A stretch of 61,486 nucleotides of DNA, filler included, from Choristocarpus tenellus KU-1152 (taxonomy: Eukaryota; Protista; Phaeophyceae), in assembly GCA_964200185.2 (NCBI GenBank). It is 11 parts of 11 records of this genome, joined end to end, with 100 filler letters (N's around TTAATTAATTAA, not from the genome) between each part and the next. Parts side by side here need not be neighbours in the genome. Positions count along the whole stretch, not along the records: positions 14,189 to 23,733 come from CAXNAD020003590.1; 10 more parts are not named here. One strand, written 5' to 3'. Under the pieces are notes generated by a model. That model was not told the DNA's origin. It worked only from the letters and a program-made list of their open reading frames with translations, and ran no database searches. The position numbers and the translations under genes were made by a program. This document shows, in pieces, positions 13,501-23,733 of the stretch. Each line of letters opens with the position of its first letter. Within the stretch, counting starts at the first letter, position 1.

Positions 13501-14898
13501 TTAATGTTACGTACAGACCGCACCCATTTTGAGGAGAAATATAAGATCCCACTAACCATATATTGCGGGATCGGTAGATTAGTATGAAGATGTGAGGCAT
13601 ACTGCCAATATACAGATATATGTATAGTCAGTATTCAAATACATGCCTATAAAAAAATCAACCAAAATGGGGCAGCCTACACCTATCGACGATTCCACCC
13701 CTGAAACCCTCCAAACCCCATTCCAGCACAGAATTTCACCGCATCCACTGGGGCATTTGAGGGGAGCTTGCTTGTCATATCAGCCTTTTCCATGCTAAGA
13801 TAGGAAATTTTGAAGGTGTTGTCACCCTTGGACCCTCACACTTCACTGTAGACTGCAAAGAGGCTCTGCCAGATGCACTCTAGTGTCTCCTGGGGGTACA
13901 CATTGCCTCCATTGTGGCCTCTACCAGCTCCTCTGTGTTAGTCACCCCCACGTTTTCCTTCAGCAGGTGGATGGGTTGAAAGGATCCCAGTTCGTTGATG
14001 TGAGGCCAGGTGAGTTGGCTTGCTGGGTCTCTATAACAATGATGTACCCTGCTGCCTCCTTGATCCCCCCCTCGGTGTGTGACTTTGCNNNNNNNNNNNN
14101 NNNNNNNNNNNNNNNNNNNNNNNNNNNNNNNNTTAATTAATTAANNNNNNNNNNNNNNNNNNNNNNNNNNNNNNNNNNNNNNNNNNNNCCCCCCCCCCAG
14201 ATACTTTGGTCCTATTTTTTAGCTCTTACTTTTTTTGCCCTGAATTTTCCGAGAAAACAGCAAAACCGAAACTTTTGACTTAAACAACTAGAGCAGCTAA
14301 AGCAGAGGACTTTCTGCTGCTGATGTCAAATCCAAGTGAAAAAAATAAGAAAGGCAAAGAAAAATATATGCAAGATATTGTCAGATACGAATACTTTACC
14401 TTGAGCTTTCCTGCACAGACTCTTACAGGCTTGATAGTCACCTGGGTAGTCCAACAAGCCTTCCCTTTGAGTCGACTATGCTCGAATTTGACTTCTGGCA
14501 TACTTCTCTATTCAAATCTCAATAAGTGCTTTAAGGTCGTTTCTAATCCTATCCCTGACGTCCTATCAAACTACTCAAGTATTCTGAGACTAGGTGCAAT
14601 CCTGATCCTCCTCAACAATGTATCTTTGTCCAAGCTGATCAGATTGCCTCCAAGGGTCAATCCCCAACTTCAGGAACCCACTTCCAACACTCTTCTTGTT
14701 TCACACAACTTTGAACCTAACCCTGACACTGGTCCTGTATCTGAACACAACTCCAGCAGTCCCTCCTTCAAACATGTTACTGTGTTCTCAGCTTCTCCTT
14801 GAGCTACAACTGTACATCCTGATTCCTCCTCCAAGTGATGTATCCTTCCAATGCTCACCTATCTCCCATTCACACAAAAAACAATGCCAATAACACAG

Positions 14899-17800
14899 GT
14901 GCAGTCAAAGTACGCCTCACCAAGGTTTGGTGTTGCCTCCTTTTCTACAAAACCCAGTCCACCAGTTGGGATTGGTGCAGGAAGCATGGGGTCTTTTGAA
15001 TACAACTTGTCACTGGCTCTCACTGACAACGCAGATGATATGAGGAGCTCGCTGGAGACCGTGACGTGGGCACTCAAGTGTGTTGTCAGAATTCAAGGGT
15101 GTTCCTTTCTGGAGAGCGTTTCTCACAGGGCATTTGTCTTTTCTGGCCTTGAACTGCTTTATCTTGTTGGACTCTATAGCATACTACCAAGCATCTAATA
15201 TGTTTATATACACTAAAATCAGGGCTCATTTTCCTGTGCAGTGTGGTGTAGTACTTGTTGGACTGGGTAATTGCGATAGTTGGTTGTGAGTAGAGTTGAC
15301 AGCAAAGTGAGCATCGAGCCCTGGTAAAAGAATGGGAGAGTGGGGTCAGGGCTGAGGGTTAGAGACTTGGAAAAACTGTCCTGCTTCTGGGAAAGGCAAG
15401 GTGCGAAGACATACAAAACATAGTTTGCTGCAGAGGAGAAATCTGGTCCCTTTTGCCTTATTTGCCAGGATATGATACAAGATAATCTTACCTCTTTCCT
15501 CACTGCCTGTCTGTTTACTGTCTCTTCTTGGTCTCTATGAAATTTCCATTTTATGCCATCTTTTCAACTGCAGACCCTTGATTCCACCTGGAGGGGGAGG
15601 CTCCCAGCTGACAGCTCTGTTCATGGCAGCTAAGAGGTACAACGAGACTGGCTGGAGGGATTCAACTTTTCGTCTGGTAGCTGTACTCACAGGGAGCAGC
15701 TTTGATGATGCTGAGAGCAGCACATCGAATGATCTGGTGGGTGAAGCCTAGACCCCCTTTAAACTTATCTACTCCCATCTTTTCTCATTATCTTGCAAGA
15801 TATTGATACAGCTCGAAGGCTATTGTTTTCGAGGCATCATCCACCAAAAAAAGCACCAGTGCATTGCAGTACCTTGTAGATAAAAGAGAGACTCAGAGGT
15901 CTTCATTTTTTTTTTTCATTTTTTTTCCCCCAAAGAGATCTTGACATATATCAATTAATTGAAGGCAGCTCTGAACCTCAAGTGCCACTCCCATCCCTAC
16001 TGTTTACCTAATCCTAACAATTTCCATATACTGTACTCATGGTTCGTTTCTATACAGTCCTTCCCTCAACCATGTTCTGTACCTCACAACTTTCAAATTA
16101 TATTTGCATGATCTTACTTGCGACTGTTGGGAGCTGTCAACTACTTCCTCCTTCCAATTCCACCTGTGTCAAAGGAAACTGTTTCTACGGGGATGGAAGT
16201 GATTCATCTCCTCTTTTCATTCTGTTCATCTCCCCTTTTCATTCTGAAGGATTGAGCGCCTATAACCTGAGCACCACGATGACCCTTAGATCTTAGGGGT
16301 GATCATACCTTACGAACTTTGGCAGAGTGGAGGGTGTTCACATAGGCCTTCCTTCGAAGAAATTTGCCACCTTCCTCCGAAACACTGTCATGATTCATGA
16401 TCATCAATGCTCTGTCAAGCCTCAGATAGTCACATCAAGACCACACAAAACCAAGCTCCATACACAATCCTCACAACTCGTTGAACAGTGTGACCCTCAT
16501 ACAGTATATTATTTGTACAAAATAGTACCCATCCATGAAATCCTCTTAGTTCATGATGTATGAGAAAGACAGTGTATAGGGATTCTTCTACAAGTTGGCA
16601 AAAGCATTGAGGCACTGCAACAACTCATTTCCGAACACACTCTTAGTTTGACAATTGACAGTATTTCATGAGAGGCAATCACCTGTCTATCTTAGTCTGT
16701 CATTATTTGAAACTCAAAATGGTTGAGCTTGAGCAAGGGATATCTTCTTTAATTTAACCTCTCTTCATTTTGGCCACTTGAGAAGTCCCAAGATATTCCC
16801 TGATTTCATCCCTACTCCAGAAGTGATACACGCTTCTCATTTCATGATCTTCCACCATACCATGCTCATGTGATTCCCTGTCCCCAGGATTCATCATCAG
16901 ACCCCCTAGAGAACTACATCACTGTATCAGACCTGGGCTCCCAGCTGTCCTCCTCTGCGGTTCACCCTCTATTTCTCTTGACTAACAGTGATGCCACGTT
17001 GGTAAAAGAATATAAGGATCTTGTTGAGGAGCTGGGGTTTGGAGCAGTGGTAGTGGTGGATCAAGAAGCTGCCTCAGAATCAAGCTTCAACAAGGACTAC
17101 TTGCCCTCCGCCCTAATAGAGGGACTCGAAGTGAGTCCCTTCTCACAGAGACCCTCCATGGGTTCCAATGTTCTTATAGGAGTCTAGTCGCACTGCATTC
17201 CACTGCTTGTGTGAGTAGAGTCAAGCACAAAAGAAAATGAACCGACAGGACAGTCTATGCACACACCCTCTAGTTGTAAATTATATCCACTTTTGTTTGT
17301 GCACGTGTGCTGAATGCAATAAGGTGGTGGAGGTGCGAGCAACCGTGCACCTGGGTGAGAAATTGAAGTCGGTTATACTTGCGAGAACGGAAATTCTTCC
17401 CTTGCACAACTCCTGGTTGAAGGTTCAATAGGGTGAACAGCATGTTAAATCACACCCCTCACACCCAAATGACTTGATCCCCTCTGAAGAGCACACCCCC
17501 TCTGAAGAGCTCACCCCCTCTCACTTCTCCCCACGCTCAATCACAAACAGAAACTGTACACCCAGGGTACTTTTTTCATCACCTCTGACCCTGAAAACTT
17601 CGTGTCTTCGGTGTCTCCCACCAACGACCCCTTTCGGAACGTCACTGCTGGAACTACATTGGACTTCCTAGTTAACATATCTGCTGCTTCTGCATCTGCG
17701 GGGGGTGATGGAGGGGACATAGGGGTTTCCTTTCAGGGACATGAGGTTAGGTTTAGGGTTGGGCATCAATGTTGTGACCATCTTAGGAAGTGGATAGATG

Positions 17801-20800
17801 TCTATGATAACCTAGACATCATTGTTTGGCGACTCAGATATGTCAGGCTCAGACTTGAGAATGCATTCAAATGTCTTGGTCTCCTGATGAGGACACGGTC
17901 GAGGTTGGTTTGGTAGTGGTGTAATTTGACCAGGATAGTTGTCTCCCCGTTGTTGTGTCCGGGAAAGAGGTAGCATGTGAAAAGGGCGGGGGAGATCAGA
18001 GGACAGGTGAGGGAAGACGGGGGGGGGGAGGGGTACAGAACTCGGACATATGATGATAGGGCAGGAAGACAAAAGGAAAGGGGTATAGCTTAGTGTTGAG
18101 AATGGCGAAGTTGTGTCAAATGAGAAGAGGGAGGAAGAGGAGAAGAGGACAAACTCCGTCAATGTCTCATATCTTTTTTGACGATTAGAAAAGAGTGTTC
18201 AGTGTGTCAGAGTGCTCTTGAAATAGGAAATCGGCAGTTGTTGGTACTCTAAAGGGTATCTACCCGTTTCATCCCTTTCCAAATCTACGTTTGATGATCC
18301 TATCCGTAACCCGTCGGAGCAAAATCGACCAATTTTGTTTTTGTTCTTTTATGCTTTGAATAGGCCTTGCTGACAGTAGTACACAGAAGGGAGACCTGTG
18401 CAACAGCAGAGCTGGAGCGAGGCGGTGGCAGTGACATGAATGAGCTAGATGCTTCCCGTGTGGGTTGGCTTCAGGGGTGAGGAGTGTGCTCCTGTGCGTT
18501 CTGTGGGTATTTATATGTTTGTGTAGGGTAGAGAATTCTTTAAGGAGAGGGTAGGAAAGGAATATGGTTGAAGAGGTTGTGTGTGTTCGAAGGACACTAT
18601 TTAGTGCGGCAATGGTATGGCATTCTCTCGTGCGGCAATGGGATTGACCGAAATGTGGAGTGCCCCATCTAAAGGAGACTGTTAAAGGGGAATTGTAGCG
18701 AGGTGAATATCACATTGAAGAGGAACATGTGGTAAATTCTCTATGTACAAGTGAGAGTGATGTACGAATGATCTGTATGTGGCGCTAGGTTTTTGCCTGG
18801 ATGCTTGATACTGATGGCGATTCTTCCTCTGCTAGAATAACTAGGTTGTGTAAATTTGGCACTCACTTTAAAAATGCCCAATGTCTTTGCCGTATTTGTG
18901 GGTTACAGGTTCTATGCTGATGAGTCAACAGAATGGATCTACTCTTCACTGTCTTCCTTTGTTGAAGTGCAAGGCCCTTTTGGGGTGACTCTTCGTGCAC
19001 TCAACATTTCCTGTCCTGGGGGATGCAGGTGCTGTCCTCCTCCCACCCCTCAATGGCAAAAAGACCTTCTGCACGGAACAGTTCTGTGTTGGGGCTCACA
19101 CCATATACGGTGTTGAAAATCGCCCCGATTAGTGTTCTTGGTAGGTAGGGTGACAAAAAATCGTTCACTGGTGCCTGCGAAATGCACTCTGGTATATGTT
19201 TTTGTGTCAGTTGACAGTCCAACACGCCATGTCTGCGCCCATTGTTGTATGGAGGTGATCCCATCAATGAGACCAGCAGAGGAAACCCGAAAGGAAATGG
19301 TTTTTATTTCTTGGGCAGGGTGCACTTTTATTGTCACTTCCCATACCTCAAGATCGGACAGGTCAGGGAACAAAGGGTGCCTGCTTTGCTGCATGCACCA
19401 CAGCGTTGGTATTTGTAGAACCCCCCTGGCCAAGGTCATAACTAGCAGTACTCTCGAGTAACAGAGACTACAGACGCCATATCGCGTTTGCTGTATGTAG
19501 AGGTCAAGTTCAAACCTTCCTCACCCTATCACTCTCTAACACGTTCGACCAGTCTTTTCTCAACTCCAATTGTATTTTAATAAATACGTTACGGACTATT
19601 TCCCAGTCACCCCAAAATATTTTTGAAATAGGATGGGAGGGTAGGGGAGGTGGTAGGGTGAGCGCATCCTATTGGCCTAATCAAAGCAGGGTATTCTAAT
19701 GCTCTACGATTTACTTTTTTTCCAAGGCTCTCCCTCCATTCAACTTTTTCACGACCCTACTGGTTCTCCTCCCATTACTGCTAACGAGTCAAAGTATCTT
19801 AGGGTTAGGGTAGGGCCGCGTCCATTCGGGGGCCGAAATCCAATGTTACGATTTCCATGTAATTTTGATCCGTCGCATTTGTTAGGAAGTGTCAGTATCC
19901 TTGTTCCGGACACACCATTTCATAACGTATACATTTTACCTACTCCGAAACATTTCAGAGTAGGAAAAATATCACAAAAACCCCATGGGAAGCCAAGCCC
20001 CAAATGGACAAACAGGGCAAAACTCGTACCCTCTAAGATACTTTCACTCTAACCTTTCCCCGTTGATTCTTATAAACTGCCAGCACTTCACATATCTGAA
20101 CTTCTATTCCCACCACCAAGACAACTTTATAATCCCTTACCCTGCTCTAATACACCAAATCTCCTACTCCTGCAATACATTCCGATCGTCTTGATCCCCT
20201 CTGCAAACGAACGATGATACACAAACCGGCCTGGCCACCATGCATCCCCACCCCAGTGGTGAAGAGGCATTCATGAAAGTATCTCTTGGCTATGCCAGCG
20301 AGATGCCACTTGTTCTCAAGGCATACAGCAAGGCGGACATTATAGGCTTTGATAATGATCGCCAGGCCTCATTGACTCTCACTGTCACATATGAGGATGG
20401 CACCACAGAGGATGGGATTTTGTTGTTGGATCTGGAGACTGGAACGGACCAGTGGGAGCAATCTTTTGGTGTCTTGTACCCCACAGAGATCGTATCAGAG
20501 GCCACAGTGAGTGGATCAGAGTCCTCAATAGAGAAATTGAGACTGTCTTGTTTGTGTGTACTCGGTGGAAAGTGATAGTTATGTTGACATCATCGTGCGG
20601 CTACTTATCCATAAAATAGCAGCCTTCAAACATTTGGGATTAGGGTTAGGGTAACATTGCAGCAAGCGGTAAATGCAAGGACGAATAAACTTCCTAGGGC
20701 TCAAGTATCTGGGGGAGGTGGCAGCTGTCCATTTGGGGTCAATCTTTTCATGTCACGATTTTTGTGTGATTTGGTTGCATATGTCGGATAAATAAACGTA

Positions 20801-23733
20801 ATTGCACTTTTCCTGATTTTGGCCCAAATGGACACCCTGGCGTAGACCCCCCCCCAGCCGCCGCCAGATACTTTGGATCCTAGGAAACGCTCAGATCAGA
20901 ACGTTGCTCTTGAAATAAGTCAAGTCCATCAACTAGAGATAGACTCAAACAAGGATCATGGGGATGTTAAAGGAGGGTATTTGAGTGCGATTCCATACCA
21001 GCTAGTTGACTGTGGGGATGATTTTGAAAAATACTTGTGCATAAATCTTGTATGAAGTTTATTCTATGATTCTCCTAGTCCTGAACATACTTGATGTACG
21101 ACTGAGTTTACAAGCTAGAAAGGTTATGGCCCATTCTGAGCTCTCCCTTTACTGAACCTGATACTGTGATTGATCTGATGATCCGATCCTGAGTTCGTAA
21201 AACTGCCCTGCATTGAGCTTTGAAATTGAGTACATACACTAATGGTTGAGCAGGGGCAAGTCTCAAAATACTTATTCTCCATCTTAACCTTGTCTGTACG
21301 TACCTTTTATGTGCAGTCAACCTTTTGTTGTAGAGGGGGCATTTTAGCGACTATCTGAACCAACTGTCCCTTCTTCTTCCCGGGTATTAGAGTTGTGCAG
21401 CAAACCTATAGCATACATCCTCTAACAGAATGATTCAAAGATAGGGAGGTCTGGTGTACATACAAACAGCTACCCTTATTCACTGGAGCATTTCTTGTGC
21501 AAATTTGGCTGGTTAACGAGCATAGGACTATGTCTACCGGATAGAATGAGAAAATGATCTTAATGGCTTCTCACTGGCTAAATCTGGCTACCTCTGGGTC
21601 TCCTGTGATACACACCTCCCCGCCCCTGTGCCCCTCATATTTGAATTGCTTGACAGCATATCTGGCAGTGTTTTGTAGTAGACCTTGTGAAATATTTCAT
21701 CCATAGTGCTCCAAAATATCTTGCTGAACAAGATGGTAGTGTGAGGTTCTTTGCTTTGATTCTAGGATGGAGTTATCCGCCTCAAGTTTTGCTCAGCATT
21801 CTCATTATCACCTTAATCGTTCTTTATGACAGTGTCTCAGGAATCTATTTGCCCTTGGCTTTAGCATGTTTGTAGTCTAACCTGTTAGGCGGCAGCAGGG
21901 CTATGCTCTAGTCCCTCGACACCCTCCACGACTGACTTCTCCCTCACCTCCTCCACTAGGTGATAATTTCTTTTTCAGGGACTGGCGGAGCATTGTTTGC
22001 CTCTGTAGGACTGTTTGCTCACCCCACAGCTGCCTGCCGATGTGATGCAAGATATTTCTTGGATATAGAGTCCGCACCAGTGAGAACATGCTTTGTTTGA
22101 TGAGCAAAATTCATGTAAATTTTTCGCAGATCTTGTGCTAGCCTTGTGTTGTCGATGGTCTATATGCGAATGACAATACACTTCTGGCGGGTAAGCTGAG
22201 GGAATGCTAACCAGAAACCACAGAGAGTGCTAAGAGAAAATGACTGAGCTTGAAGGTGTCTACAACTATGAAAAGTGCACTACTCCTGTAAGAATATAGG
22301 AGGATGAAATGCTGTGAGTATGACCTTGTACTTCGCCCTAGTTGTTACTTTTCTGAGGGGTGAAGGGTGGACAGGTCAAAGCTGACCAATTCACGTGCTT
22401 TGCCTTTCCAGCATAGCCCTTGGGTGACCTAACCACCGAACATTGCTCTAATCACCTGATCGAAGGCTGAGGTGGATGCACCAAACACCAGCAATTTTAT
22501 AAAATCCATTCAAGAGAGTAGTCCTTTATGTCACTCTCACCAATAACATCACGTTTATAGTATGACCTCTTTCTGGAATGCATATGCCTTGTTTGCCTTG
22601 TGACTAGGAGTCAAACCCAATGCTGCTGTCAGCCCGTTGCTAAGTGAAGCATTCCAAGTAAATCTATTTCTCTCAACAACACTCTGCTATGTGAAGTACT
22701 CTCCACAATTTTATTCCCACCTCTAGCAATCACCAGGTTGACACGTACCACAGACGTATGTGAGTATAAAGGTATCATGGCAGAAAATTGATCTCTCTTA
22801 AGTTTGTTCTCTTCCTGTTCCTCTTCGTCCAGTCTGTACTAGTGTGTAGCTTGATAGACAAGGGCCCCACACATCCTCATTTTGCTCCCTCAGGCAAAAC
22901 TGTGCAGTCCCCAGCCCAGTTGCCGGTTCTTCAAGGGGGACTGTAACTACTGCAGGGCAGGATACAAGTGCCCTCAGGTTTGACCACATGGAGGACTATC
23001 ATATCCCGAATGGCTTCCACCGTAACATGTTTCCCACTTGGCGCATATACCCTTCACTACTCCTTCCTTAACATGGCCTTTCTTACTTTCCCACCTTTTC
23101 ATAAAAGGTCAGCGTCCAAACTACTGCTGAATTCTTCATCTGTTCTCTAAATTTCATCACAGCAAGTAATATAGTCACAGAAGTCAACATGTAGTCTGTA
23201 TAAGCAACATCCAGGAAATCCATAAGAGGTGTAGTCTCATGAATATGTTACGCATTGGTGTCTTCCATAATGATTCCTGAAGTGTTCAATCTAGCGCACG
23301 CCCTATTCTTCAACCCTCGGATAAAGTACCACCTTCCTGTCCCTGTGTCATTTTGCCTTCCCCCAGTCTTTTGTTTCTGTGTCAACGGAAGCAATAATAT
23401 GGAGTAATTACACTAATCTGGAGATCTTCTTTTCAAAGCAGTGCGAGTATGTCTTCTTGTCTTTCCGCCTCCACTCCCCTCATGATTCTCTGTCCCACTC
23501 TACTTGTTCCAAATGCTGCGACTGCAAGGGGGGTGTCTTGACATCGTGCATGGACGAAAATGATGGAGAATCACAGTACTACTCCATGGGAGGGTCCACA
23601 GAGTGCTCCACCTGCCCCGATGGTTGGATTTGTGATCGTGGTCTTGCTGTCCCATGTGGCTACGGGAAGGGGGCCACCTCTTCGACCACAAATGTAGGTG
23701 GCAGTGATGCACAATTTTGTGAGTCATGCCCAC
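14899..23733 (+). CDS. Integrin-beta-like vWA (betaI) + hybrid-like + CBM-like + Cys-rich repeat protein (partial, >=10 exons)
   Basis: Exons are 14899-15065, 15574-15736, 16888-17130, 17551-17745, 18364-18476, 18909-19028, 20257-20506, 21960-22079, ~22894/22936-22977 and 23529->23733. All introns are GT-AG with matching phases (2,0,0,0,2,2,0,0,0) and there are no stops. Motifs include RFGVASFSTKP, SQLTALFMAA..ETGWRDSTFRLVAVLT, YITVSDL..QL..SAVHPLFLLT, YKDLVEELGFGAVV, NVTAGTTLDFLVNISA and CSTCPDGWIC. Both ends are cut by spacers, and the last two exons are less certain. Confidence 0.8.
19786..20049 (+). mobile_element. Sola2-like MITE, family A, full copy (intron of integrin-beta-like gene)
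   Basis: TIR GAGTCAAAGTATCTTAG...CTAAGATACTTTCACTC with 4-bp TSD TAAC; 264 bp. Confidence 0.85.
20698..20879 (+). mobile_element. Related MITE, family B (poly-G subterminal)
   Basis: GGCTCAAGTATCTGGGGG...CCAGATACTTTGGATC flanked by CTAG/CTAG. It has internal GTCCATTTGGG/CCCAAATGGAC motifs and is homologous (inverted) to 29852-30032. Confidence 0.75.

Follow-up and report, generated by a model that had tools for sequence, protein, structure and literature searches.

The window analyzed here is a stretch of 61,486 nucleotides (nt), filler included, from the brown alga Choristocarpus tenellus KU-1152 (assembly GCA_964200185.2). The piece at positions 14189-23733 (record CAXNAD020003590.1) contained part of a gene, running off both edges of the piece, whose product resembles the head of integrin beta chains. 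Ten exons were identified on the + strand from 14899 onward; they are bounded by AG/GT, agree in phase, and read through ~552 codons without a stop. The introns between them were 420-1453 nt long, and the GC content was 0.51 in exons versus 0.44 in introns. The exons are listed below together with the evidence from CAM9974939.1, an orthologous protein of Discosporangium mesarthrocarpum; betaI denotes the integrin-type von Willebrand factor A (vWA) domain.

14899..15077, + strand: exon 1, betaI, FGVASF strand and next helix (46% identity to CAM9974939.1 562-626)
15574..15736, + strand: exon 2, betaI, GWR motif and strand matching LLVFxTD, metal ligands lost
16888..17130, + strand: exon 3, C-terminal half of betaI with HPLFLLT strand, LGFGAVV, and last helix (67% identity to CAM9974939.1)
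17551..17745, + strand: exon 4, second half of the hybrid (immunoglobulin (Ig)-like) domain (tblastn and orthologue model)
18364..18476, + strand: exon 5, last hybrid strand, conserved Cys, and beginning of a beta-rich domain (tblastn and orthologue loci/model)
18909..19028, + strand: exon 6, beta-rich domain with CxxxC motif (65% identity to CAM9974939.1)
20257..20506, + strand: exon 7, beta-rich domain without Pfam or PDB assignment (tblastn)
21960..22079, + strand: exon 8, end of the beta-rich domain and beginning of the Cys-rich region (65-72% identity to orthologues)
22894..22977, + strand: exon 9, Cys-rich repeat region (83% identity to CAM9974939.1)
23529..23733, + strand: exon 10, CxxC-type Cys-rich repeats, ending at 23718 or at the piece edge, where the gene is cut

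Most of betaI comes from exons 1-3; the second half of the hybrid domain comes from exon 4 and the beginning of exon 5. The exon for the first hybrid strands and the strand of MIDAS (the metal ion-dependent adhesion site) lies beyond the left edge of the piece. Exon 10 has two possible ends: a GTGAGT donor is present at 23719, and read-through up to the edge at 23733 gives CESCP, which is CxxCP as in the orthologues. A translated motif search recovered seven of the eight motifs quoted in the first-pass annotation as uninterrupted + strand stretches, namely RFGVASFSTKP (14923), FEYNLSLALTDN (14995), ETGWRDSTFRLVAVLT (15644), YITVSDLGSQL (16915), HPLFLLT (16963), YKDLVEEL (17011), and NVTAGTTLDFLV (17638). 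GHEALLTVV, the eighth motif, is split between exons 4 and 5. These results agree with that annotation in two respects, the in-frame splicing of ten short exons, which also recur in order in related loci, and the integrin-like order of their motifs.

Exon 3 as a query against 1.84 billion representatives matched 17 proteins, the best being CAM9974939.1 ('unnamed protein product, partial', 1050 amino acids), itself an automatic, partial, and unnamed gene model. By tblastn, this protein matched exons 1-9 in order with 44-83% identity (E 1e-7 to 1e-29), whereas the reversed piece, used as a control, gave a best E of 0.21; these collinear matches indicate that the exon chain is not due to chance. 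The intron positions are common to both genes, in line with the brown-algal type proposed at first. The other exon 3 matches were single-exon fragments, nearly all from Logan assemblies. The Logan contigs L002-L008, L011, and L012 carried the same exons in the same order, and all ten exons recurred in other loci; we treated these loci as brown-algal because of the shared introns and because their accession block is consistent with a macroalgal genome project. For exons 3, 4, 6, 8, and 9 across eight loci, 78 of 78 splice sites were found at the same position and phase, and the differences from Discosporangium fell mostly at third codon positions (23, 10, and 53 by position in exon 3). Compared with the other loci, Discosporangium scored best against the C. 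tenellus gene in exons 1-7 and 9, and a loop in exon 1 was common to these two without a counterpart elsewhere. From these similarities, the gene is likely that of a basal brown alga. Judging from sequence, the ten exons are a real part of a conserved brown-algal gene. An artefactual exon chain was rejected by the conserved splice sites and the codon-position bias, and bacterial contamination by the spliceosomal introns common to the piece and a brown alga. There were no matches for the gene in metagenome contigs, plasmids, or NCBIfam, and further full-length relatives were not found in homologue searches, which is a weak negative since relatives of ~1,900 amino acids exceed the length range covered.

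The gene structure varied in some respects within the family. The equivalent of exon 10 is split by an intron in L002 (13209-13860), L003, and L005 and unsplit in the window (23529-23733), L004, and L008, a pattern that, from the aligned loci, reads as intron gain or loss within the family. In two database fragments (P0004 and P0008), the equivalents of exons 3 and 4 are contiguous, which suggests either that these contigs stem from transcripts or that the intron was lost; in the former case, they would be independent evidence for the exon 3/4 junction. Additionally, the exon 3 orthologue at L005:1621-1857 (SRR23272293) is interrupted by an in-frame stop close to its end in an otherwise apparently intact gene, which could reflect a pseudogene, an allelic variant, or an error of assembly.

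The head of the protein was identified as integrin-like by sequence and by fold. Residues 529-723 of CAM9974939.1 matched Pfam Integrin_beta (PF00362) with 26.7 bits against a cut-off of 24.8, and its best single-sequence matches in PDB were pactolus (2IUE, E 0.006) and integrins beta7 and beta2. A profile (A5, a 20-row fragment alignment) in which CAM9974939.1 492-860 was aligned with exon fragments, each in its own row, was searched against PDB, and every one of its 15 matches (E up to 10, best 1.4e-4) was to pactolus or an integrin beta chain. Searches of Pfam and PDB with single exons gave weak matches or none, and exon profiles alone found nothing for the hybrid domain. The structure modelled was that of the database orthologue, not the window protein, with exon pieces as alignment rows. 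AlphaFold on A5 produced a fold in which two strands precede an alpha/beta domain and five others follow it, with a predicted local distance difference test (pLDDT) of 56.7 and a predicted template modelling score (pTM) of 0.53; the single-sequence model of CAM9974939.1 475-1012 was unusable (pLDDT 34). The best 50 Foldseek matches were all integrin beta chains (best E 5.9e-12). In a fold search against 48,161 representatives, integrin beta7 was matched with Z 13.5 over 259 residues (root-mean-square deviation 5.1, model 1-328 on 102-442), hybrid domain included, versus Z 8.6 for the best unrelated vWA, while betaI-only chains reached Z 10.8 and aligned over model residues 35-270 only. Model residues 1-335 aligned to beta3 80-427, which by established numbering we take to be betaI plus most of both hybrid halves. 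In this model, the head is the betaI vWA of integrin beta inserted in a hybrid domain, and the earlier proposal of a betaI vWA followed by the second hybrid half in integrin order held. A generic vWA was rejected, as integrin beta ranked far above other vWAs by both sequence profile and fold.

The metal-binding sites of this head differ from those of integrins. Motifs for MIDAS and the synergistic metal-binding site (SyMBS) were defined according to 10.1101/2020.04.29.069435, and positions were assigned by alignment to beta7. The first-pass annotation had expected the DxSxS motif of MIDAS in a missing 5' exon; the window's own exon for this strand is off the piece, and none of eight orthologues carries the motif, the sequences at its position being EANAS, ELESA (two loci), ESESR, EADVR, ESDAA, EINAH, and ESDVD. 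The SyMBS motif N-D-x-P-x-E was absent at the aligned position in the window and the eight loci. The Glu of SPEGG was kept only in Discosporangium (PPGGGG in the window), the Asp after the LLVF strand was replaced by Gly or Gln (TG for TD in the window), and the Cys-bonded loop that follows this strand in integrins was shorter and without Cys. At the site adjacent to MIDAS (ADMIDAS), two of the eight had DD, three had a single D, and three had none. The alignments thus indicate that the canonical MIDAS and SyMBS residues are lost.

The rest of the protein was reconstructed from orthologues. Three fuller orthologues start with a hydrophobic, signal-peptide-like segment by hydropathy, as anticipated for the missing 5' part, which is off the piece in the window. 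The gene start is bounded by a neighbouring gene on the opposite strand. Upstream of the orthologue in two runs (L009:4368-8642 and L010:1997-6077), we found a SURF2 gene followed by the minus-strand head-to-head gene, which has ankyrin matches in L009. After the signal-like segment, about six Kelch-like repeats were found in three loci (best Pfam E 4.5e-4 and 6.4e-4), and these probably form one beta-propeller. Before the head, CAM9974939.1 contained seven Ephrin_rec_like repeats, one EGF, and a Calx-beta domain by Pfam; the plexin-semaphorin-integrin (PSI) domain had no match in this protein, EGF and Calx-beta preceding the hybrid domain instead. The head is followed by the beta-rich domain of ~170 amino acids (exons 5-8), for which no Pfam or PDB assignment was found and which, as a guess by eye, could be a carbohydrate-binding jelly roll. 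More CxxC repeats come after it. These downstream repeats match Ephrin_rec_like and TNFR_ELAPOR1, the sole EGF being upstream of the head, and the integrin epidermal growth factor-like (I-EGF) cysteine-rich stalk was not found after the head. Therefore, the proposed Cys-rich repeats do follow the head, although they are Ephrin_rec_like-type and not of integrin-stalk type.

At the C-terminus, six loci showed a stop 0-3 codons after the C-V/I of the last Cys-rich repeat. None of these six orthologues with a visible end had a transmembrane (TM) helix, a glycosylphosphatidylinositol signal, or an NPxY tail, and the last exon of the orthologues is not hydrophobic (terminal 19-residue hydropathy at most 0.86). 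No conserved downstream TM or NPxY exon was found within 1-5.6 kb in the four loci compared, and no window exon had a hydrophobic stretch of TM level (maximum 1.7). The missing 3' exons for a TM segment and an NPxY tail, which the first-pass annotation had expected, are not supported by these ends. A hand sum of an orthologue's exons gave a full protein of ~1,900 amino acids. Its layout, as read from orthologues, would be a signal peptide, about six Kelch repeats, about ten ephrin-receptor-like CxxC repeats, one EGF, Calx-beta, the hybrid domain with betaI inserted, the beta-rich domain, CxxC repeats, and the stop.

The protein looks like a secreted matrix protein and not a receptor, because its relatives lack a membrane anchor and the standard metal-binding site. 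We consider it likely, with a probability of roughly two in three, that the product of the gene is a secreted scaffold built of rods and heads, with a MIDAS-less betaI/hybrid module reused for contacts. The protein would be destined for the wall or the surface of the cell, where disulphide-rich CxxC repeats would act as rods spacing several binding heads, i.e., the Kelch propeller, Calx-beta, the betaI/hybrid module, and the further beta domain that may bind glycan. The betaI/hybrid module would serve protein-protein contact without the Mg-carboxylate grip of integrins, as in pactolus, and Calx-beta probably binds calcium and stiffens the chain. Such a protein would cross-link or position matrix components and would not by itself signal across the membrane. 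Some observations weigh against the scaffold. The signal peptides were called from hydropathy without a predictor, the Kelch matches are below Pfam cut-offs, and the structure model is of moderate quality, given its pLDDT, pTM, and 20-row fragment alignment. Both ends of the window gene and of its nearest relative are missing, so the termini come from more distant orthologues. Furthermore, MIDAS position 1 is Glu in eight of eight sequences and position 3 is always Asn, Asp, or Glu, a conservation that makes a remodelled Glu-based cation site possible.

This last point bears on a reading that we regard as rather unlikely, namely a soluble partner or single-chain mimic of the integrin head, in which betaI/hybrid still switches, docking on its own Kelch propeller or, in trans, on that of the membrane-bound alpha-like protein, possibly through the Glu-based site. 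A propeller-type domain and betaI/hybrid do occur on one chain, and the hybrid domain, which relays shape change in integrins, is retained; nevertheless, Kelch differs from FG-GAP, ~400 residues of repeats separate the two domains, and the loops that contact alpha chains in integrins are shortened here. If true, it would represent an independently assembled integrin-like head in seaweeds, and a soluble, wall-bound beta half would link the alginate wall to an orphan alpha-like receptor. Long, secreted CxxC-repeat chains are a typical trait of algal flagellar-hair and surface proteins. A gamete, spore, or flagellar surface protein (a hair or adhesive component) in place of a vegetative wall scaffold is thus conceivable, at similarly low odds. 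A weakly expressed, female-only transcript auto-labelled ITGB1 in a kelp gametophyte transcriptome (PMC6742357) would, if it belongs to this family, point the same way, although it may be a mislabel or contaminant.

The first-pass annotation had called the gene a receptor ectodomain and a possible beta-type partner. The corresponding explanation, a true integrin-beta-type membrane subunit that pairs with brown-algal alpha-like FG-GAP proteins and whose TM exon is kept in the basal lineage or alternatively spliced, now appears improbable. The betaI plus hybrid fold is present, alpha-like integrins, talin, and alpha-actinin exist in brown algae, and the 3' ends of the window and Discosporangium genes lie outside the available sequence. 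However, the six orthologues that stop right after the last Cys repeat without a hydrophobic segment or NPxY tail, the lack of a conserved TM/NPxY exon downstream, and the low hydropathy of the window exons speak against it, as do the missing DxSxS and PSI, the shortened loop after the LLVF strand, and the non-integrin repeats. The membrane receptor was accordingly rejected on the early stop, the absent TM, and the absent NPxY; lack of a TM segment is also what the first-pass annotation had named as weakening its receptor claim. The least credible explanation, to which we give hardly any weight, is that the vWA is of a generic type and stands next to an Ig-like domain by chance, or that the exon chain is an artefact; profile matches of single exons are indeed weak and model confidence is moderate, but the conserved splice sites, the codon-position bias, and the rank of integrin beta above all other vWAs by profile and fold oppose it. 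Among these alternatives, the secreted scaffold is preferred, and the second option suggested earlier, an independently built adhesion or wall protein, fits in a secreted form.

Regarding origin, the Atlas cluster nearest to exon 3 was a bacterial Integrin_beta cluster (feature score 0.90, with 154 shared features only), and we regard the bacterial likeness of the vWA, also noted earlier, as a lead. The fold was closer to eukaryotic integrin beta models (TM-score 0.52-0.54 in the Atlas structure comparison) than to bacterial Integrin_beta clusters (0.42-0.46). The domain may have been acquired by bacterial transfer or may be an ancient relic. One survey recovered integrin beta homologues from Amorphea and CRuMs, plus partial look-alikes from one cyanobacterium and one choanoflagellate (10.1101/2020.04.29.069435). 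Intron-rich algal genes with betaI and hybrid domains extend the known range of this module to stramenopiles and give a tangible example on which to ask whether bacteria supplied the integrin head on more than one occasion or whether it goes back to early eukaryotes. No description of the family was found in the literature, in a search that covered mostly sources other than subscription journals. A faint Integrin_beta match is already precomputed for the Discosporangium model, and this, together with the kelp ITGB1 label, suggests that the domain may be present in annotation tables. The gene offers a testable candidate for a structural protein of the brown-algal matrix, a class about which little is known, and is the only beta-type candidate found here as a partner for algal alpha-like integrins, while integrin signalling in seaweeds is not shown by this finding.

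The introns of the piece contained a few other features. The long open reading frames in introns had no Pfam match. One of them, a 172-codon stop-free stretch at 14284-14799 (+ strand) in the intron before exon 1, also had no orthologue match. A short element with imperfect inverted ends was found in intron 7 (20695-20876), one end of which recurs at 14191-14214 at the left edge; the element resembles a small transposon of the non-autonomous kind, which could be the reason for the contig break. In addition, TTAGGG unit pairs were observed at 19799-19810 (intron 6) and 20640-20651 (intron 7), beside repeat-like stretches.

In comparison with known systems, integrin beta subunits (ITGB, PF00362) share the betaI-in-hybrid arrangement and the motif order, and they gave the best sequence-profile and structure matches. 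They have DxSxS, SyMBS, PSI, an I-EGF stalk, a TM segment, and an NPxY tail, all absent from the algal family as far as its sequences extend, which places the family outside integrin beta subunits; conversely, the algal family has Kelch, Calx-beta, and ephrin-receptor-like repeats that integrin beta subunits lack. Pactolus (integrin beta-2-like), the top single-sequence PDB match given above, aligned with Z 10.8. Its betaI domain has lost MIDAS function, and it is not known to pair with an alpha chain. Pactolus is derived from rodent beta2 and keeps the usual integrin layout, unlike the algal protein, and the resemblance most likely reflects parallel loss.

Non-canonical ITGB-like proteins have been described as a cyanobacterial betaI (Trichodesmium), a choanoflagellate protein (Didymoeca), amoebozoan type II ITGB, and Dictyostelium Sib (10.1101/2020.04.29.069435). 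These also reuse a betaI-like vWA in other architectures, but none is from a stramenopile and none has the algal layout, and the descriptions of type II ITGB and Sib include membrane or tail motifs at the C-terminus, which the algal family lacks. The vWA_SIBA-E family (PF24909) matched exon 2 with only 12.7 bits against a cut-off of 27 (E 0.087) and had no match in CAM9974939.1 at E 0.1.

Brown-algal integrin-alpha-like FG-GAP proteins belong to the same lineage and have extracellular adhesion-type domains (10.1101/2024.02.19.579948; PMC8307928), but they are membrane proteins with FG-GAP propellers. No beta-type protein from brown algae is described in either source, and the earlier statement that brown algae have alpha-like integrins only matches both, as well as 10.1101/2020.04.29.069435. 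The C. tenellus gene does not encode an integrin beta subunit; in it, the head of integrin beta occurs in a new lineage and within a new, apparently secreted, architecture.

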